Source of the DNA: Entomortierella parvispora E1425
Taxonomy: Eukaryota; Fungi; Mortierellomycota
Direction: 5' to 3'
Length of the DNA stretch: 64,000 nt
Assembly (NCBI GenBank): GCA_020891255.1
Contig: BQFW01000001.1
Location: 248,001-312,000 of the forward strand
The notes under the pieces are model-generated. The model searched no databases, was not told the origin of the DNA, and saw nothing but the letters and a program-made list of their open reading frames with translations. Position numbers and translations under genes: made by a program. The first letter of the stretch is position 1, and every line of letters starts with the position of its first letter. Positions 2,134 to 64,000 of this stretch are shown in pieces.

Positions 2134-5100
2134 ATGGAAAACAACCATAGCAGTAATAGTAACGATTCCCCTTCAGCGTCAGTTGAGCCATGTGTCGACA
2201 AGAGCGAGGATCTCTTTGATCTTCCATCGGCAGACGACCATGCTCATCCCTCAAATTTCAATCAACAGAGCGCCACTATGGAGGCAGCGTCCATGAATGA
2301 GCTGAAAGACCATGTTGCTAGTCAGGATCCTCCAGAGGCGACGGACCATGACCAACCCATGTTGGCCAACTCGGAAATGAAGAAGCAAATGACAATCTTG
2401 GATCCCGCCCTCGCCGCCGCCGCAGTGCCGTCGGCTATAGCACCGACTGTCTACGCCCTGGCCTCGAAGGTCCCGTTTCCGACCATCAACCACCTGACCA
2501 TGAACATCCCCAACCAACCAGTGGTCCAGGAGAAGGTTGCAGTCCCTTTCAAAACCATCCTCTGCTCCCCTCCAAATGAAACCACAAACACACCACAGGA
2601 TCGACAACACCAAAGCCCAGAATATCGGTCGAAAGCGCACAGCTCAGCGACAGCTCATCTATCCGAGTCGACGATGTATGACGATCCGGATCAGATGCAG
2701 GAAAATGATACCCCGCAAAACAATGTCCATCCGTACTTTGCAGCTGCAAAGTTCCCAGAGCGCCCACCGCTATCAAGAAGTCGAAGCCAGCATTCCAGCG
2801 CCGAATCAATGACTGGATCTCAACCAAAGGGTCTGCAGCGACCGACTTCTGGAATGACTTCCCCTCCTCTGACGACCAACCTCACGACTGCATCCTCGAA
2901 TTCGGACACTGTCCCTGTGCACCATGTCGTCTTCGACGAGAACTTGGATCCAGGTCTTGTCAAGAAAAATACTAACAAACACCAACAGGCGCAGGATGAT
3001 GAGGCTGCCGCCGCATCTAGCGGGAACAACTCCATTGGATCAAGGAGCACAGTCTTTGGGTTTGCGCCATTGTACGGCAAAGGGGACCATCAGGCCGCTA
3101 TGAGTTCTGGTGAAGAGCGCGTCTTGAAAGAGAGCCTTGCTTGCCGAACGATACCCCTCTCTGGAAGACTGACATCCGCCCACAACAACGAATCGGGCGC
3201 TATCTCAGGAGCAATATTTAGTCAGAGTCCAACAGAGGATGGACAGCCACAGGCAACTCCACATGCCCGAGCAGGAATTTCAAGAACTCTTAACCTGGAC
3301 CAACTCGAGAGTGGTGTTGAGCCCACAGTCCCTGATTCTGAAGAATCGGTCGAGTCGTTGATTGAAACCAAAGACTGGTCTAAAACAGGACTTGGTCCTA
3401 GATCATCTTGGCCTGCAGAGCTCAACATGCTCATGCCTCTCCTTATGCGATCGGCCTCGCCTTTGGCTCTTTACTGGGGAGACCAAAACTATTTAATCTA
3501 TAACGATGTAAGTTACGGCACCTGGCTTATCCCGCAGGTCTTGACTGGGGACCCCAGCTTCGGAAGATCAACATGAGATTCCTGGAGGTCGGGAGGAACC
3601 TTTTAAACCCGTCGAGGTGAACTGAAGGCAGTGATGGCATTCCCGATTGTTTGCTGCTAGCGTAAATCTGGTCTTCATCGGGGTCACTTCCTTTCGAGTT
3701 TTGTGCGACCAATAGGGGAGTGATGTTTCTATGGCTTGCTTCTAAAGGTACTGACCAAATTTTGTTTTGTCTGATCTCGATAGGCCTGGCGACCGATATT
3801 GAAGCAAAAGCACCCTCTGGGTAAGTTCTGCAAGGGGAAGGATGGAAGACAACGGATCCCTGCTGTCGGAGACAGCTTAGTCGTTCGTCTTGCCTCAATC
3901 TGAGCTAATCTGAGATCGCAGCCTCCGAAAGTTTCAATTGGGTTTAGTGTCTGGATTTTGGGTTTGATGAAGAAGCTAACGTTTTGAGTTTGTTCGTCTC
4001 TTCAACTCCTCGATATAGCTATGGGCATGCCCGGCGCCACGGTCTGGAGTGAGATTTGGGACGTGCTCGGGGCACAGATCGACCAGGTCAGGAAAGAGGG
4101 CCGTGGAAACGACAACAAGGGCCTGCGCTTGGACCTTCATCGGTAATCCCCCCCCCCCCCCTCTGCTGTTATGTTTTTTAAGATCCGTATATTCGAAAGC
4201 TGCCCTTCATTGGAACTTGGTCTTGGCCTGACCCCTTTTATATCTGTCTGTTATATAGCGAGGGATATGAAGAAGAATGCTACTTCGACTTCACTTTTTC
4301 GCCCATCTTCCTTTCGGATAATTCGATAGGCGGTATATTTGCGTGCGTCCTGGAAGTGACCCAATCAATCTTGAACCAACGGCGGCTGATGACCTTAAAT
4401 CAATTCAGCAAACAGGCCCCCCTCATCCAATCTGTCACTGGGGCGTATTCAATGATCACAACAATTCTCCAGGAATCCAACAATCTCGACATTCCATTCT
4501 CAATCGTGTACAGCACTAAGGAACTTGCCAAGGAGCCTTGTCCTGCACCAACATCCCACGGGACGTTTTCGCCACCACCTTCACAACCTCCCGTCGTTCC
4601 ACCCGTGCCCGACGATATCCTTACGACAGGACATCACGCAGGTACAGGACTGAAGTCTGGTGAAGGTGTTTCAAAAACTAGGATAGAATTGATTCGCTCA
4701 TATTTTTCTAATGGCCTTATTCCAGGTAAATGCGATGCCCGACGAGCTCCTCAGGCTGCTATCTTGCGTAGCACATCATTCGACCGTAAGTTGGAGGTAG
4801 TGGACTATGGTCAGACGAAAGAGAAAATATTTTCAAAAGCCACCTCCACACGTCATATTCCAGACTCGCTCCTTATCACACCCGAGGAATATGAGCCACT
4901 GGATCCGTCGGCGCCTATTTATGATGACCCATGGGCATGGCCTGTCCGCTCTGTTCTCGCAGACGGTATTCCTCGACTGGTCACGCTTCCAAAGTCGACT
5001 CACAAACTCGCTCGAGCTATACTTCTGCCGATCCTTGAGAATCCGTCTGTTCTTGATTCCAGGATTACGACAATATTGATTGTCGGAATCAATCCATTTC

Positions 5101-8100
5101 AGATGCTTGACAACCAATATCTGGACTTTCTTGCTCTCTTGGTTGCCAATATCGCATCCCTACTTCACTTTGGACGTTCTCGCGAGGAAGAAAGAAAGAC
5201 CACGGAGGCCCTCTTTGAGCTCAACAAGGCCAAGATCTCCTTCTTTCAAAACATTTCGCACGAGCTTCGGAGTAAGTTACTGACATATGTGTGCTCCACC
5301 TCAAATTTCTCCACACTGCTAATCTAATACCGTGCCTCCTTTTTACTTTATTAGCACCACTGACTCTAATGCTTGCGCCGCTGGATGATGTCTTGGCACA
5401 AACTCCAGAAAAGGCGCCAACGAGAGCGAACTTGGAGATGATCCGTCGCAATTCCAGGCGACTCTTAAAACTCGTCAACACCTTACTCCAGTTTTCGAGA
5501 ATTGAGGCAGGAAAGGGACTAGCAGTATTTGAAGAGACCGATCTTTCCAAGGCTACCCGCGAGGTGTCCGCCAATTTTGAAAGTGTCGCCCGCGGATTCA
5601 ACTTGGATTACATTATCGACTGCGAGGATCTGAGTGGAATCCCTGGAGGAATCTGGGTGGACCAGGCCATGTGGGCTGGAATCATTCTAAACTTGATTGG
5701 AAATGCATTCAAGCACACTTGGTCCGGATCAGTCACTGTCCATCAATACCCCGCCAAGGGCAAGAACGGTCGGGATGGAGTAGCAGTTGATGTCGCGGAT
5801 ACTGGCGTCGGAATCTCAGCCGACCATCTTCACAGCCTTTTTGGACGATTTAACAGGATCGAAAACAAGCAGTCGCGTTCTCATGAGGGAACAGGAATTG
5901 GTCTGTCCCTCGTCAAAGAGTTGACGGAAGTTCATGGAGGTAATGTCTCAGTCACGTCTGAAGTGGACAAAGGCACCTGTTTCCATCTGTGGATCCCCGC
6001 TGGTCGGAGTCACCTCCCAAGCTCTCAAATCAAGCTTGGAGATTCCAACGAAGCAGGTCAGAACTCTCGGACGTTTAATAACGACATCATGAACAACAAG
6101 ACAGACGCCTCCATGTATGTGGAGGAAGCAACTCAGTGGATTTCTCAGAAATCTCTTCCAGGATCAACTTTGACCGCTTCTGGCACAGATTCAACCGAGG
6201 AAGAGAAACCAGAGGATGATGACGATGATGCCATTCATTTGGGATTGGACCACATGCGCGATCGCCAGGGCTCTGTTGAAAGCAACCAAGACTATGAAGT
6301 ATCGACTCTTGACGTGGACGAAGAGGAGTTGTCCAGGATTCTCATCGATCCGCCAGAAGATGGGGAAGTGGTTATACCAGAAGAAGAGTTGGCGAAACTG
6401 GAGGCGCGCCGGAGTTCATCAACTGTTCACAGCCCAAGACTTTCCACTGCCTCGGCCGAAGGAATATTTGCGTTTAAGGAACAAGCGCCATCGGCCATAT
6501 CTTTCACTTCTACGGAAAGGGTGCTTGACACTGGAATGAACGATGATGGTGGGTTTGGATCACAGGAGCAAACACGGGAACTTATAGAGGAGCCCGAAGA
6601 CGACAAGGCAATCTCACCCCGGGCTCGGTCTCGACGGAGCTATATCATCATTGTCGACGACAACAATGACATGAGGACCTACCTTCGTGAGATTCTTGGC
6701 AAGGACTTTAGAGTCCGCTGCGCTGTGGACGGTCTGGACGCCATTCGTTTGATTTCGGAGCGATTGCATCAGAGGAAACGAATCGATCTGGTTTTGAGTG
6801 GTATGCAGTTTGATGTAGCTGTTTGATGTATTTGTTTGTGCTTGATATCTTACATCGGCATTACTTCCTTGAGAGTGCTAATGAATCATGATATCTTTCA
6901 TTATAGACGTTGCGATGCCGAACATGAATGGATACGAATTGCTTAAGCGGCTTCGAAGCGACTCTGCGACAATGACGACCCCATTTATTCTGCTCTCCGC
7001 CCGAGCTGGAGAGGAGGCTAATGTTGAGGGACTTGATTTGGGCGCGGATGATTGTCTTGTCAAGCCGTTTTCAGCGCGGGAGCTCTTGGCTCGTGTCCGA
7101 TCAACCATCCGACTCTCTGACCTTCGCCATGAACTGATTCGAGAGCAACGTCACGCACTGGAGATGAAACAGCTAATCTACTCGATTTCTGTTCGCATTC
7201 GAAGTGGACTTTCCTTGCCCCAAATCTTGGACACTGCATCCAAAGAGCTGTTCACGGTGATCCGATGCAACGCCATTCGAATCTGCCGGTTTCGACGAGT
7301 GGATCCGGAGTCTGGTCAGCATTGGGTCCGGTTTGTTAGTGAAATTGTCAGCTGCGGGAAACCAAAGGTATTGACGCCGACAGATCGATTGTTGCCCAAG
7401 GGTCTTGAGGTGAATGAGATCCATCATGTTCACGGTGGCGACACGGAGATGGCCGGTGATCTGCGTCATGTCAGACATTACCAACATCCAGTATTTGGTG
7501 CAAAGAACTTTATCAGTGTAGCGCTCATCCACAACCGGAGAATCTGGGGATATTTACTTGCGTCTAAGGATGCCGAAATGGTGGACTGGTCCCAGAGCGA
7601 AAAGTTGCTCTTTGAGCAAACTGGGAATCAGATCTCTTTGGCAATTGCCCACGCCAGTCTGTGGGAGATGAAGAAGTCCCAGCAGGTTGAAATGGAGGCA
7701 GCTCATGCTGCTAATGAGGCTAAATCGCAGATTTTGGCCAACACAAGTCATGAACTTCGAACAGTAAGTCATCGAAGATTATCACTGCGAAACATATTGG
7801 GGATGTCATGCAGTATGCTTACATTTCGTCCGCTTTGATTTGACCGTTAGCCTATCGGCGCCATTGTAGGAGCACTGAGCGCACTGGAGGATACTGATTA
7901 TAACCTCACCGGAGAACAACGCGACATGGTCAAGATCATGCAAATCACCAGTGATGTGGCCCTCAGCGTTATCAATGACTTGCTGGACACGGCGAAACTG
8001 GAAGCTGGCGCGATGAGTCTGACAATCAAAGAGTGCCCTGCTTTAGCAGACACTTTGGTGCAATCTGTTCGTATCTTTGCGGACAAGGCAGGACGTAAAG

Positions 8101-39085: not shown

Positions 39086-40129
39086 ATGCCTGTGGACTTT
39101 GACAAGCAGGAATATTGGTCGGAGCGGTTTACGCATGAGCAGACATTTGAATGGCTAATGCCCTGGTCTGTCCTCAAGCCATGGATGCATCAGCTCCATC
39201 TCTTGCCCAAGCCATGTCATTCCATCGCTGCAGCTGCCTCTTATCCAGACACAACAAGGTCGACCCAGGATGAGCCAGTGTCAACATCTACAACAACACA
39301 ATCGACAGATACCTCGGCCCCCTTCCAGATCTTAAACTTGGGATGCGGCAACTCGGATCTTCCTTTGGATCTCTACAGAGCAGGGTATCCCAACGTCCTG
39401 AGTGTCGACTTTGTGGGCTCTGTTGTTGAGCGTTTGAAGAATCGCTGTGAGCAAGCCATCGGTTGGACCAACAGTGAGTGCACTGGCAGAAGTGGATTAC
39501 AAGAGAATATACCCGAGCCTGGCCCATGCGCCTCATCACCATCATCTGCTACAACAAATGCGCTAGCGGCGGACACAACCACAACGACAGAGATGGCACA
39601 TTCCGGCAAAGCCAATAACAACAACAACAACAACAACAGTTGTCCACTTCGATTTCAGGAGATGGATTGCCTCGACATGTCCTCTCTTCCTTCGAACCAT
39701 TTTCATTTATGCATCGACAAATCAACCTCGGACGCCATCTCGTGCGGGGACGATGACCAGTATACAAAACTGAGGACGCTCTGCGAACAAGTCGCAAGGG
39801 TGATCAAGCAACCTGGTGGCGTCTGGTGTGTAGTATCCTATTCAAGGTTCCGTCAATACGAGTGGGATCAAGGTTTAGGCATGGGCCTCTGGAAGACTGA
39901 AGGAATACACGAAATCAAAGTTGAGGCGAGACCACCGCCCCCTCCAACAACACTGCCAACGCCTTCCGACGCTTCGTCCGAGTTGCCGGTCTCGTCCACC
40001 CCTTCAAAGCATGGCAGAAGAGGAAGAAAGGAGGCACAACAGCAAAAGCATCAACTTCAACAGCAACAACAACACACAGTCCATGTGCCAGACGTGTTCC
40101 AATACCTGTATGTGAACAGACGGTTATGA
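39086..40129 (+). CDS. Class I SAM-dependent methyltransferase, EEF1AKMT4/METTL13-N-like
   Basis: DKQEYWSERF...FEWL; motif I ILNLGCGNS; VDF; MDCLDM; IDKSTSDAISC; with low-complexity insertions. Confidence 0.85.
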   Translation: MPVDFDKQEYWSERFTHEQTFEWLMPWSVLKPWMHQLHLLPKPCHSIAAAASYPDTTRSTQDEPVSTSTTTQSTDTSAPFQILNLGCGNSDLPLDLYRAGYPNVLSVDFVGSVVERLKNRCEQAIGWTNSECTGRSGLQENIPEPGPCASSPSSATTNALAADTTTTTEMAHSGKANNNNNNNNSCPLRFQEMDCLDMSSLPSNHFHLCIDKSTSDAISCGDDDQYTKLRTLCEQVARVIKQPGGVWCVVSYSRFRQYEWDQGLGMGLWKTEGIHEIKVEARPPPPPTTLPTPSDASSELPVSSTPSKHGRRGRKEAQQQKHQLQQQQQHTVHVPDVFQYLYVNRRL

Positions 40130-40244: not shown

Positions 40245-40597
40245 TGACAGCTGAAATAAAGTTTCCGAAATGGACTCGGCCCTGCAACGCGTCAATGTGT
40301 CAAATGTGTCAATGTGGTTCTTGTGAGTGGATCTTTCCTTTGAGGGATGATTATCCCTGTTATTCGGATTTGGACAGACCGTAGTAGAGTGATCACCCAC
40401 CTCTCTGACCACGACAGGATCCTCTCCCGTTGACACCTACACCAGAATAATCAATGAGTTCTCGGATTGAGCAGATTAGAAAAAATGACATGGGTGACAT
40501 TTGGGAATGAGGCCGCATTTGTGCATTTGGCTTACATTGTGTCATTCATGACAGGGACCCTGGACAAAGATGGGGGTCAGTCAAAGGCATATTAAAA
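40245..40597 (+). promoter_or_regulatory. Putative promoter of the Cys-rich gene: eight TGACA/TGTCA motifs and a TATA-like TATTAAAA
   Basis: Motifs at 40245, 40298, 40307, 40431, 40486, 40495, 40540 and 40549; TATTAAAA at 40590-40597, followed by a pyrimidine tract. Confidence 0.45.
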
Positions 40598-40760: not shown

Positions 40761-42432
40761 ATGAACCCTTGCGGAAACAGCGCCTGCACCTGCGGTGCCA
40801 ACTGCGGTAAGAACTCATTCTACAACACGCCTCATTACTTTGGGGAGCACTGGTCGCCTTCCGTTTGTGTGAGCGCTCGATCGGCAGCTCTCGAACTACC
40901 TCACCCTCTCATGCTTTGATCACACAAAAGACATGAACACAGGCCATGGCCAAGGTCGTGCCAAATTGCTCTCTGTGATTTTTACCAATCCTCGGTCTGC
41001 CTTTTGCCAGCAATTTTTTTTTCCTTGTCCGTTGCGGTCGCGTCATCTCGCGCCATCCATCCCTCTCGAGACCTAGAAAATCAACCCTGACGTTCTCTTT
41101 TTTTTTAAAAAAAAAAAAAAACTCCTTCGTCATTCTTTGACACCATAGGTTGCGGATCCAAGTGTCAATGCGGCAAAGGTGAAGCCGCTGCGTCTTCTTC
41201 CTCATCGTCATCTGCTCCCTGCCACTGTAGATCCGGCTCTCAGTGCACCTGTGGTGGTCACTGCGACTGCGCCAAGCGCCAGAAGCAAGGCTGCGGTTGT
41301 GCCAAGGGGGCTTGCCCCTGCGAGAAGTCTGGAGGAGATTGCAAGTGTGACAGCAACTGTCAGTGTGCCAAGGGAGGCCATGGAGGCTGTGGATGTGCCA
41401 AGGGTGCCTGCCCCTGTGAAGGATCGTCTGGAGGTGCGTGCAAGTGCGACAGCCATTGCAAGTGTGCCGGCAAGGGACACGGGTGTGGATGTGCCAAGGG
41501 TCATTGCCCATGCGAGGGATCTTCCGGTGGCGACTGCAAGTGCGATTCACATTGCAAGTGTGCCAAGGGTGACTGTGGATGTGCCAAAGGTGCCTGCCCT
41601 TGTGAAGGAAAGTCTGGAGGAGACTGCAAGTGCGACTCGCATTGCAAGTGCGCTAAGGGTGGCTGCGGATGTGCCAAGGGTGCCTGCCCTTGCGATGCTG
41701 GAAAGGACTGCAAGTGTGATTCACACTGCAAGTGTGCCAAGGGTGGCTGTGGATGTGCCAAAGGTGCCTGCCCATGTGAGGGCAAGTCTGGAGGAGATTG
41801 CAAGTGTGATAGCCACTGCAAGTGTGCCGGTAACGAACATGGTTGTGGATGTGCCAAAGGTGCCTGCCCTTGTGAGGGAAAGTCTGGAGGTGACTGCAAG
41901 TGCGACTCGCATTGCAAGTGCGCCAAGGGTGGCTGCGGCTGTGCCAAGGGTCACTGTCCTTGCGAGGCCTCATCTTCCTCTGCTGGAGGAAGCAGCAGCT
42001 CTGCCGAATGCAAGTGCGACTCCCACTGCAAGTGTGCAAAGGGTGCCCACGGTTGCGGCTGCGCCAAGGGCCAGTGCCCTTGTGAAGGCTCCTCTGGAGG
42101 GGAGTGCAAGTGCGAGTCGCACTGCAAGTGTGCTGGCAAGGGTCATGGATGCGGCTGCGCCAAGGGCCACTGTCCTTGCGAAGGATCTGCTGGTGGCGAT
42201 TGCAAATGCGACTCGCATTGCAAGTGCGCCAAGAAGAGCGGATGCGGATGTGCCAAAGGTGCCTGTCCCTGTGAGGGCAAGTCTGGGTAAGTCTAGAGAG
42301 GGGATACCTTCGTTCATTTGTTGACATTGCAAAACGCGTAAAAATGTCGCCACCCACTGACGCGTCCCTCTCCAAAAATATCGCGATAGTCACGAATGCA
42401 AGTGTGGAGGTGATTGCAAGTGCGCCAAGTAG
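40761..42432 (+). CDS. Very long modular metallothionein-like protein (408 aa, 101 Cys, 11 eight-Cys repeats)
   Basis: Exons 40761-40806, 41149-42286 and 42390-42432 with GTAAG donors and TAG acceptors total 1227 nt in frame. Translation: MNPCGNSACTCGANCGCGSKCQC..., then repeats of CGCAKGACPCEGKSGGDCKCDSHCKCAKGG, ending CKCGGDCKCAK*. No aromatic residues, Leu, Ile, Val or internal Met. Confidence 0.93.
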
Positions 42433-42897
42433 GACATGCTTGTCGTAGCATGGACGGCGACTCGTTGATGCTCTTTCTGTTTTCCAATACGACGGATGAT
42501 GAACATGCCAATGTTTTTTTTCTCTTTTTTTATTCTTTCTCTTTTCCGTATCCAACTTTCCTCCCGGTACAACAACTGTTGTTGTTTCCGTGGCTTTCCC
42601 GATCCTTCAGCGCGAACTGATCGGGCTTCTCATCGACCACGAAGACAGAGTGCTCTTCCACGATGAACTTTTTTGTTTCTTTCTTCAATAAACCAAATCA
42701 ATCGTCCATGTTTTCGTCATCCTGCCACACTTTTTGCCATCTTGGAAATCTGATCAGCAGCTGCTCTGTCGTTGTCTTGCATGAACCCGCCTTCTGCCAT
42801 CTGGCCAACTTTCCTCTTCTGCTTTCATCCACTCACCCACACCTCGCAAGCTCTTCCCCTTGAACATCTCTTTATTTGCCCACAAGTCAATCAACGG

Positions 42898-60874: not shown

Positions 60875-63800
60875 TTAAAAAATGATACCGTGCTGCTCTT
60901 TGAAGGTTGTGACCAAGTCCATGCAGTTGTCCAAGTTGCTTACTGGGAGCCATTCGTCAGCTTCTCTGCCGTAGCCTTTGAATGACACTAGGAACTGGTG
61001 TTGTCTGCGGTAGAAGCGGTACTTTAAAATTTCGTCCACTTCATACTCCTCTTCGCCGTCAATTACAGTGGGATCCACGGGGGCAGGAGCTCGAATGCCG
61101 AGTGACTCCGGGGACGGCAAATAGGGTCGAAAGGTATCAACGTGGAAGACGTCATGGATTTTGTAGAATGGTGGCAGCTCGACGCGGAAGGTGACAGGTG
61201 AGTGTTGCTCCAAAAGTGTGAACGGGCCAAGGAATTGAGGTCGAAGTTTATCGGCTGGTCTGATACTGTCGGCAGGGATGGTGATATTGGTGGCACGCAG
61301 CAGGACCTTATCGCCAACCTTGTACTTGTGATCCCGTCGTCGCTTGTTTGCCTGTTGCTCCTGATGATCCTGAGCACGCTGCAGAGCATCCTGGGCCAGG
61401 GCAAGGGTGGTCGCCTGCTCAGTCAGGAAGGTATCGACAGTGGGGACTGAGCTGCTGGGTTTACCGAGGAGAGCGGTGGGGAGACGAGGGTGCTGGCCAG
61501 AGTTGAGGAAGAACGGCGAGTATCCCGTGGATGCATTGACAGCGTTGTTATAGGCGAATTCCAGTGACGGAAGGAGCTGGTCCCAGTTAGACTGCTTGTT
61601 GTCAATAAACGCTCTCAACATAGTCTTCAGCGTCTTGTTCATAACCTCTGTCTGCCCATCCGTCTGTGGGTGGTAGGCGGTTGACAGTGCAAGTTTGACA
61701 TCCATTAGCCTGTGCAACTCTTGCCAGAATCTACTAGTGAATCGAGTGTCGCGGTCCGAGATGATGGATGTTGGTGTGCCATGCAGCTTGAAGATGTTGT
61801 CAAAAAACTGGTGGGCGACGTCGACGGCTGTGGCAGAGGTAGTACTGGGGACGAAGTGAGCTTGCTTGGTCAGCTTGTCGACAAACACTGTGATGGCGTC
61901 AAAATTTCTAGCTGTGGGCGGAAGAGGGCCGATGAAGTCCATGGTGACTACCTCCCAACGTTGCGAAGGAATGGGTAGCGGTTGCAAGAGTCCAGCTGGT
62001 CGATCCTGTGAGTCCTTGTTCCTTTGACACTTCTCGCAGGTTGCTACATACTGCTGGGTATCCTTGGCGATGTGGGGCCAATATACGAAACGGCGCAGGT
62101 TGTCGTAAGTCTTTTGAAAACCAAAGTGTCCAGCAGTGGCAGAGTCGTGAGCGTCGTGCAAGAGAGTGAGGCGGATCGGGGAGTGCCGAGGGATGGCCAG
62201 GGTGGTTGCTCCACGTCGGGTAAAGTAGAGGAGGTTGTTCTGGAATGAATATCCATTGGCAACCTTCCCATCCAGGCAATCCTTGTAGATGGGTCCAAGT
62301 CGAGGATCGTCGTTGTAGTCCTGGACAAGCTGGTCACGGACGTCCGGGGACAGGGAGACGCTGAGGTTGTATAGCTCAACAGGGTCAGGCTCGCGGTAGT
62401 CCGGTCGTCGGGAGAGAGCGTCTGGGACGATGTTGTCAACTCCTCGCTTGTACTTGAAGTCAAAGTCGTATTCCTGAAGCAACTCCATCCAGCGAGCCTG
62501 TCGACGAGTGAGTTTGGGCTGTGTGGGGAAGTGGCGGAGGGTGGCGTGGTCGGTGTGGACGCTGAACTTGGTTCCATCGAGGTAGTAGCGCCAAGTGCGG
62601 AGCGCATGGATGACAGCCAACAGTTCCTGCTCATGGACAGGGTAGTTCCGCTCAGCTGACTGCATTTTCCTGGAAGTGAATGCGATGGGATGGGTATTCC
62701 CTTCCCGGTCAGTCTGCAGCAGCACTGCACCGATGGCGAAACCGGATGCATCTGTTTCGACAAAGGTGAGAGATCAGGGTCGAAGATGCGGAGGACGGGG
62801 GCGGAGCAGATGGCGCGTTTGAGCTGAAGGAATGCAGATTGTTGTTCGTCGGTCCATTTGAAGGGAGTGTTGTTGGCGAGGAGGGAAGAGAGAGGGAGGG
62901 CAATCCCTGCAAAGCCCGATACGTACTGTTGATAAAATTGCGCAAGCCCCAAAAATTGCTGGACGTCCTTTGTGCTCTTGGGGGTGGGCCAGTCACTGAT
63001 GGCTTTGCTGAGCCCGGCCGATGTTTTGATCCCGTCCTTGGTGATGGTGTGGCCCAAAAATTCAGTTTCGTCTTGCATGAAGGAGCACTTGCTCAATTTC
63101 GCGTACAGACCATTCTTGCGGAGGAGAGCCAGGACGCTTCGGAGATGCTGCAGGTGTTCTTTCTTTGTCTTGGAGTAGATCAACAGATCGTCGAGATACA
63201 CGACAACCCATTTGTCCAAGACTGGATCGAGTACTCGCAACATCATATTGGAGAACGAAGCAGGAGCGTTAGTAAGGCCAAAGGGAACAACATTGAACTC
63301 AAAGTGACCATAGCGACAACGGAAGGCAGTCTTGTGTGTGTGTGGTTCAAAGATACGCTGCTGATGATAACCGGATAACAAGTCCAACTTGGAGTAATAG
63401 CGTGCTCCACGGAAGCGGTCAAGTAGCTCGTCGATACGGGGCAACGGGTGTCTGTTCTTCCTGGTGATCTTGTTGAGGCCACGGTAGTCGACGCACATTC
63501 GGAGTGTGCCGTCCTTCTTCCGCACAAAGAGCACGGGGGCGCCATAGGGAGAGGTACTGGGTTTGATAAAACCTGCTGCTAGCAATTGGTCCAGTTGTTT
63601 GCGAAGTTCGTCAAGCTCGGCGATTGAAAGTCTAATGACAGGGCGGAAGGGTGGGTCGGCTGTCGGGTCGGTCTCGATCTTCATAGCATCACCACGGTCT
63701 AGGGGCAGGCCGTCCGGGAGTTTCTCCGGAAAGACATCAGCGAACTCTTCCATGACAATGGACCGCACCTCTGGGGTCATATCGGGAATTGTACGCGGTT

Positions 63801-64000
63801 GGTCAGTTTCTTCAGAGGGCTCTGGGGTGTTGCGAATAAGGGCCAGGAACACCTCCGAGCCGGGCAGGGTTGCCATGGAATGAAAGTGCATGTGTGTGAG
63901 GAGGAGTCCTTTGGTGCGGCTTTGGATGTGATCGGCCTTGAAGCCGCGGCAGCTCCATTTGACATCGATTCCATTGTGAGTGAAATGAAGATCGTTGGTG
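60875..64000 (-). CDS. pol: Retrotransposon pol: RT, RNase H, integrase, chromodomain; one frameshift at about 62770; open at the window edge
   Basis: RT YLDD; RNase H ETDASGFAIG (restored by adding one base) and ELLAV; integrase HHCC, D-D-E (VTMDF, SDRD, QTEVMN) and LGPF; chromodomain EYEVDEIL...FLVSFKGY...EWLP. Confidence 0.93.

Follow-up and report, generated by a model that had tools for sequence, protein, structure and literature searches.

A gene of Entomortierella parvispora likely to encode a 408-residue modular metallothionein that represents a new sequence family

A high cysteine content, CxC motifs, and the absence of aromatic residues define metallothioneins (MTs). Several large members are known, built as chains of repeated Cys-rich units, and metal binding has been found to be additive in such tandem-module proteins. 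In fungi, these are the Cu-thioneins CnMT1 (122 aa) and CnMT2 (183 aa) of Cryptococcus neoformans and TmMT of Tremella mesenterica, a protein of 257 aa with 57 Cys in 7-Cys units that is encoded by 10 small exons and whose expression has been reported as constitutive; the 7-Cys unit of the Neurospora crassa type reads CxC-x5-CxC-x3-CxC-x2-C (PMC4755600). In animals, OdiMT2 of Oikopleura dioica (399 aa, 123 Cys) is made of six repeat units, BscMT1 of Botryllus schlosseri (365 aa, 105 Cys) consists of nine 12-Cys repeats and can bind as many as 36 M(II), and the Cd-specific 10d-AbiMT4 of the mollusc Alinda biplicata exceeds 300 aa with its ten beta domains. A genome survey reported that Mucoromycotina genomes lack Dikarya-type MTs as well as animal ones, and our literature search returned no paper on MTs of Mortierellomycota. 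Here, we describe a locus of Entomortierella parvispora E1425, a soil-dwelling member of the Mortierellaceae (Mortierellomycota), situated in a stretch of 64,000 nucleotides (the window), whose predicted product resembles these proteins in architecture.

A sequence-only reading of the locus had proposed that three exons splice in frame to a protein of 408 aa with about 25% Cys. A scripted splice of the window sequence (Table 1) reproduced this exactly, yielding a 1227-nt CDS and a 408-aa product of 39 kDa and pI 8.3 that contains 101 Cys (24.8%), 84 Gly, 53 Lys, 43 Ala, 42 Ser, 20 His, and 20 Asp. The MT-like composition that had been noted was equally evident, in that 100 of the 101 Cys lie in CxC motifs (50 CxC pairs), CC and CxxC are both absent, and the entire protein is free of Phe, Trp, Tyr, Leu, Ile, and Val. 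The initiator Met1 is its sole Met and thereby its lone aliphatic or aromatic residue, which leaves no signal peptide, as had been claimed, and rules out classical secretion, a hydrophobic core, and autonomous folding. The module parse recovered the proposed architecture as well, namely a head of 63 aa that contains 13 Cys and, behind it, 11 modules with the consensus CGCAKGxCPC-linker-CKCxxxC(K/Q)C. Each module is 28 to 40 aa long and holds exactly 8 Cys, arranged as CxC-x4-CxC-x5..15-CxC-x3-CxC, together with 1 to 3 His. At the nucleotide level, a period of 90-96 nt was detected in the array by TRF. The AF2 model gave no autonomous fold (pLDDT 39, pTM 0.19), which might be compatible with an apo-thionein. 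The suspicion that the program-made list of open reading frames skips exon 2 for want of a suitable codon was also borne out, since the Cys frame of exon 2 lacks codons for Met, Val, Leu, and Ile (no ATG, GTG, or TTG) from which such a frame could start; both other plus-strand frames are present in the list at this locus, as are long antisense ORFs. Within the 64-kb window, there is no second Cys-dense frame of this type.

Table 1. Features of the locus (positions count from the first letter of the window)
Feature	Position	Strand	Description
Conserved promoter blocks	40452-40570	+	Found by alignment to the upstream region of the ortholog and by motif scan
Exon 1	40761-40806	+	ATG plus 15 codons, then one further base (MNPCGNSACTCGANC-G); donor G|GTAAGA in phase 1
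Intron 1	40807-41148	+	342 nt, GTAAGA..ATAG; acceptor context ..CCATAG|
Exon 2	41149-42286	+	Remainder of the head (41149-41291) and modules (41292-42286); ends at |GTAAGT
Remainder of the head	41149-41291	+	7-Cys block, Ser-rich linker, and 6-Cys block CxC-x5-CxC-x3-CxC
Modules 1-10 and first half of module 11	41292-42286	+	Tandem units of 28-40 aa, 8 Cys each
Intron 2	42287-42389	+	103 nt, GTAAGT..ATAG, phase 2, within module 11; acceptor context ..CGATAG|
Exon 3	42390-42432	+	End of module 11 (HECKCGGDCKCAK); stop TAG at 42430-42432; kept in the ortholog on contig L003
3' UTR	42433-42692	+	Conserved block at ~42596-42676 (alignment to L003) and AATAAA at 42687-42692; putative role

When the translation of the +1 frame was used as bait, it retrieved P0005, an ORF on the ENA metagenome contig ERZ27249417 k141_390369 (L003), and this contig carries an ortholog of the whole gene. 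The product of the ortholog has 456 aa and 109 Cys in total, with 12 modules behind a 63-aa head with 13 Cys, in which 57 of the 63 residues are identical to the head of the E. parvispora protein. The two genes share the ATG context, the phase-1 donor after MNPCGNSACTCGxxC-G, the acceptor, and both intron positions; the introns of the ortholog measure 308 and 104 nt, with the second one inside the last module in both genes. Over 407 aligned residues the proteins are 86% identical, and 101 of the 101 Cys of the E. parvispora protein are conserved. The modules pair one to one between the species, the long Ser-rich linker falling in module 8 of the window and in module 9 of L003. Since the modules correspond and L003 has one more, the array predates the split between the two lineages, while its copy number is still changing. 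All 8 Cys are invariant in the 21 modules aligned from the two species; the positions of the His residues vary between orthologous modules, which makes a role of His as ligand uncertain. On the same contig, the metagenome gene caller had split exon 2 of the ortholog (1035-2316) into two wrong-frame ORFs of 174 and 271 aa, the latter being P0005, and a Crinkler-domain gene lies at 3842-4621, ~1.4 kb downstream of the ortholog.

Outside this ortholog, searches for relatives returned little. No Pfam family was found for the protein even at E<=10, neither exon 2 (phmmer) nor a profile of the 21 modules matched an MT among the PDB sequences, and a word search of 5.8 billion proteins found no relative for either of its queries, exon 2 and the head together with two modules. 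An exhaustive phmmer search of 1.84 billion representative proteins returned only four repeat proteins, an EGF-repeat kinase among them, all of which were rejected as spurious. The protein thus shows no significant match to the curated MT families (Pfam and MTs of solved structure) and is filed in none of them. In the Atlas feature search, the nearest entries were unnamed short Cys-rich clusters (0.70), with MT clusters reaching only 0.5-0.58. A scan of genome contigs, a collection of bacteria and archaea, gave no match. The sole match from a scan of metagenome contigs, JGI Ga0209755_10439470, was discarded as a TG-rich satellite that is non-coding, with all frames interrupted by stop codons. 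This satellite is 1.2 kb long with a period of ~40-60 nt, and its translation mimics CxC peptides, making it a false positive for Cys-repeat searches in general. The assignment of the protein to the MTs is accordingly one of composition and motif logic rather than of homology, and the protein most likely belongs to a previously undescribed sequence family.

We consider it likely, and hold this view with good confidence, that an expressed nuclear gene of E. parvispora encodes a cytosolic multi-modular MT of such a family. The Cys content falls within the ~15-35% that MTs place in CxC, CC, or CxxC motifs, aromatic residues are lacking where few or none are expected, and His is abundant, with 20 residues, a feature shared by some Zn-MTs. 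A molecular weight of 39 kDa is not low, as would be usual for an MT, an exception that has likewise been accepted for OdiMT2, BscMT1, TmMT, and 10d-AbiMT4. The tandem arrangement of the module-built MTs is also present, with 11 units (12 in the relative), invariant Cys, and dN/dS values of 0.06 among modules and 0.08 between orthologs. In the reducing cytosol, the 50 CxC pairs would be present as free thiolates, and the 101 Cys with ~20 His would enclose metal-thiolate clusters. The head with its 13 Cys and every 8-Cys module with its 1 to 3 His would act as semi-independent cluster units joined by Gly/Ser/Lys linkers. A reading in terms of metal-thiolate clusters is favored because Cys spacing that is fixed across 21 modules and two species argues for a geometric constraint, and the one known to be of this kind is the metal-thiolate cluster of MTs. 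By analogy with BscMT1, at ~3 Cys per divalent ion, the predicted capacity would be ~33-40 Zn or Cd ions and more for Cu(I). The high Lys and low Asn content (K:N 53:5) and the frequent His may tentatively point to Zn/Cd over Cu, given that the K/N rule fails outside gastropods and is therefore not general, and that the His positions are not conserved. The array itself goes back to old tandem duplications of the 90-96-nt unit and has since been kept by strong purifying selection, with the number of modules varying among relatives (11 versus 12).

Several other explanations of a protein with this composition were weighed: (i) a cytosolic thiol-rich protein might serve mainly as a redox buffer or as a cysteine/sulfur store, possibly drawn on by Mycoavidus endobacteria, which would fit a cytosolic protein with 25% Cys in a strain that harbors Mycoavidus sp. 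B2-EB, the type species of Mycoavidus being named for its cysteine requirement. We regard this as unlikely, since a thiol store needs no invariant CxC spacing, whereas the 8 Cys fixed in 21 modules and the full set retained in the ortholog point to a cluster constraint; moreover, bacteria had been removed from the line that was sequenced, and the gene is expressed by relatives in soil, with nothing tying this expression to the symbiont; (ii) it is improbable that the protein is a structural high-sulfur protein, cross-linked by disulfides in the manner of keratin-associated proteins, for instance in spore or zygospore walls, because a protein with neither a signal peptide nor a hydrophobic residue has no classical route to the wall, because its Cys motif is exclusively the CxC typical of metal-thiolate clusters, because it is Lys-rich and basic as MTs are, and because no fold is predicted by AF2, even though tandem repeats very rich in Cys, Gly, and Ser are what such a protein would show. 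Going beyond the metal-binding role, the protein might also be a reservoir of cysteine and zinc under host control and as such condition the symbiosis between Mortierellaceae and their cysteine-dependent Mycoavidus endobacteria, with the module number tuned by symbiotic or soil-metal ecology, but this is a speculation that we hold to be very improbable.

The multi-modular MT presupposes that exon 2 is read in the Cys frame, and the pattern of substitution bears directly on this. In pairwise comparisons of 21 core codons among the 11 modules, differences at codon positions 1/2/3 numbered 88/66/494, and the mean values among modules were dN 0.073, dS 1.27, and dN/dS 0.057. Against the ortholog, the Cys frame gave dN 0.092, dS 1.20, and dN/dS 0.077, while the identical nucleotide alignment gave dN/dS of 2.37 in the +1 frame and 1.24 in the remaining sense frame. 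Purifying selection acts in the Cys frame only, and from the codon-position asymmetry and the complete retention of Cys in the ortholog, the repeat pattern is far beyond chance; the module duplications are old, with the peptide held fixed.

Splicing was assessed with RNA contigs of relatives from two soil metatranscriptomes (X1 and X2), aligned at 80% likeness, and these cross both of the junctions that the sequence-only reading had predicted. In two contigs, one from each set, the last letters of exon 1 run directly into the first letters of exon 2 within the 30 letters before 41169, and the joined sequence codes for ASCGCGSSCQ, from which it follows that intron 1 is removed at the 40806 donor. 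In an X1 contig, 42286 and 42391 are separated by just one letter, which differs, so that intron 2 is removed as predicted. The alignment of one X1 contig begins exactly at the ATG (40761), and an X2 contig ends with the C terminus ..ADCKCAK-stop. The gene is real and is read in the Cys frame, on which the codon positions of the modules, the ortholog, and the spliced RNA of relatives agree; the expression documented in this way is that of relatives rather than from RNA of E1425 itself. In a DNA run (X5) from a second strain labeled as this species, the locus is found at 90-95% identity, and the short-read contigs break inside the array. A further run (X6) was considered as high-expression RNA and dropped, since exons together with conserved non-coding blocks are also expected from DNA of a divergent strain. 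The proposal that the product is instead the Ala/Val/Pro/Arg-rich +1 frame, or that the locus is a non-coding repeat, has in its favor that the +1 frame is open over 381 codons, was adopted by the ENA gene call on the relative (P0005), and is compatible with the length of the 434-aa GenBank product, but it is already effectively refuted by the concentration of module differences at third positions of the Cys frame, by the use in the RNA of relatives of the very donor that sets this frame, and by the frame-wise dN/dS given above.

The public annotation of the locus can be understood in the same terms. The sequence of the locus is identical on contig BQFW01000001.1 of the E1425 assembly (GCA_020891255.1), where the protein of the downstream neighbor also has an exact match. 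This assembly was built from Nanopore reads (x409), polished with Illumina reads, and annotated with AUGUSTUS. A check of the repeat count by long reads had been advised, and the assembly supports 11 modules, a number that can be trusted because long reads span the array. The GenBank gene call covers 40761-42448 of the window and gives a 434-residue product without a Pfam match. Five GT-AG two-intron models produce 434 aa over this span, of which only one retains the real intron 2. In this model the first donor lies at 40869 rather than 40807, which shifts exon 2 into the +1 frame and leaves the product with 6 Cys. The GenBank model is thus probably a frame misannotation that came about through a wrong intron-1 donor. 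The description of the gene as hidden therefore stands for the ORF list, which misses it, but not for GenBank, where a gene is called from the same ATG, if probably in the wrong frame. The 434-aa product of E1425 itself was absent from the protein searches with either frame. ORF callers, and probably AUGUSTUS, choose the wrong frame at this locus, and because of this the family is missing from protein databases except as frame-shifted artifacts. A frame without start codons combined with an odd composition constitutes a blind spot of annotation, and comparable genes may have been missed in other genomes.

The noncoding parts of the gene also show conservation. The conserved promoter blocks hold two tandem TGACAT sites (40486 and 40495), which the ortholog shares, as well as, at 40540-40553, the perfect palindrome TGTCATTCATGACA; the TGACAT sites and the palindrome look like sites for a dimeric factor and may have a regulatory role. 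The promoter motif scan found no canonical MRE, ZRE, or Ace1-type site. In intron 1, which is otherwise poorly conserved apart from a branch-site region, a block of 51 nt (41008-41058) is ~93% identical to the intron of the ortholog and may represent, among other possibilities, a regulatory element of the intron; Rfam gave no match. The neighboring genes, a HIT/DcpS-type gene, a methyltransferase-like ORF, and an XPA_C-containing protein, are unrelated to metals. The methyltransferase-like ORF lies just upstream (39086-40129, +) and has a weak Methyltransf_25 match; its product has no exact public match, and public gene calls list none between 38788 and 40761. Elsewhere, the window contains a reverse-transcriptase ORF near its end (62044-63891, -; RVT_1, E 1e-34), which marks a retroelement, and two ordinary fungal genes, a histidine-kinase ORF (5291-6826, +; HATPase_c/HisKA) and a C2H2 zinc-finger ORF (33332-34816, -).

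Set beside the known large MTs, the E. parvispora protein shares with CnMT1, CnMT2, and TmMT a fungal origin and tandem CxC-rich units with spacers and, by prediction, a cytosolic location and a high capacity. It differs from them in its unit, as the sequence-only reading had maintained on the basis of the Cys patterns: the Cryptococcus and Tremella proteins have 3-8 units of 7 Cys with almost no His in 122-257 aa, whereas here there are 11 units of 8 Cys and 1-3 His in 408 aa. The second block of the head fits the first six Cys and both spacings of the N. crassa-type unit, without its x2-C, and the 11 modules depart from that unit. Whereas TmMT is spread over 10 small exons, the array here occupies one exon, and the MTs of Cryptococcus and Tremella come from another phylum and show no sequence match by Pfam or HMMER. 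OdiMT2 is likewise a giant tandem-repeat MT of similar length, but it is an animal protein unrelated in sequence, with a pair of t-12C and 12C domains that contain CC motifs. BscMT1, from which our capacity estimate is derived, is close to the E. parvispora protein in Cys number and length; it is also an animal protein, with 12-Cys domains of the ascidian type and a K/N ratio of 1:1, against 53:5 here. 10d-AbiMT4 is a comparable long chain of near-identical small cluster domains with ~9 Cys each, and by analogy the 8 Cys and a His of each module might make up a nine-ligand set comparable to such a domain; its mollusc beta-domain sequence is unrelated and has no tradition of His ligands.

The sizes quoted for OdiMT2, CnMT2, and TmMT with its 7-Cys blocks, against which the protein had been ranked among the longest MTs, agree with the published values. 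That ranking holds, as 408 aa exceed OdiMT2, BscMT1, 10d-AbiMT4, and TmMT, but both OdiMT2 (123) and BscMT1 (105) have more Cys than the 101 found here, and the 456-aa relative, itself longer, also stays below OdiMT2 in Cys number. If metal binding is confirmed, (i) the E. parvispora protein would surpass OdiMT2, the longest natural MT among those compared, by 9 aa and its 12-module relative would do so by 57 aa; (ii) early-diverging fungi would gain their first multi-modular MT, the founder of a family of 8-Cys/His modules; and (iii) the 11 to 12 old, recognizable, and constrained modules of these proteins could be of use for the study of repeat-protein evolution and for the design of high-capacity metal binders. 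Should the MT reading be true, the array would represent a fourth independent expansion of modular MTs, after those of tunicates, molluscs, and basidiomycetes.
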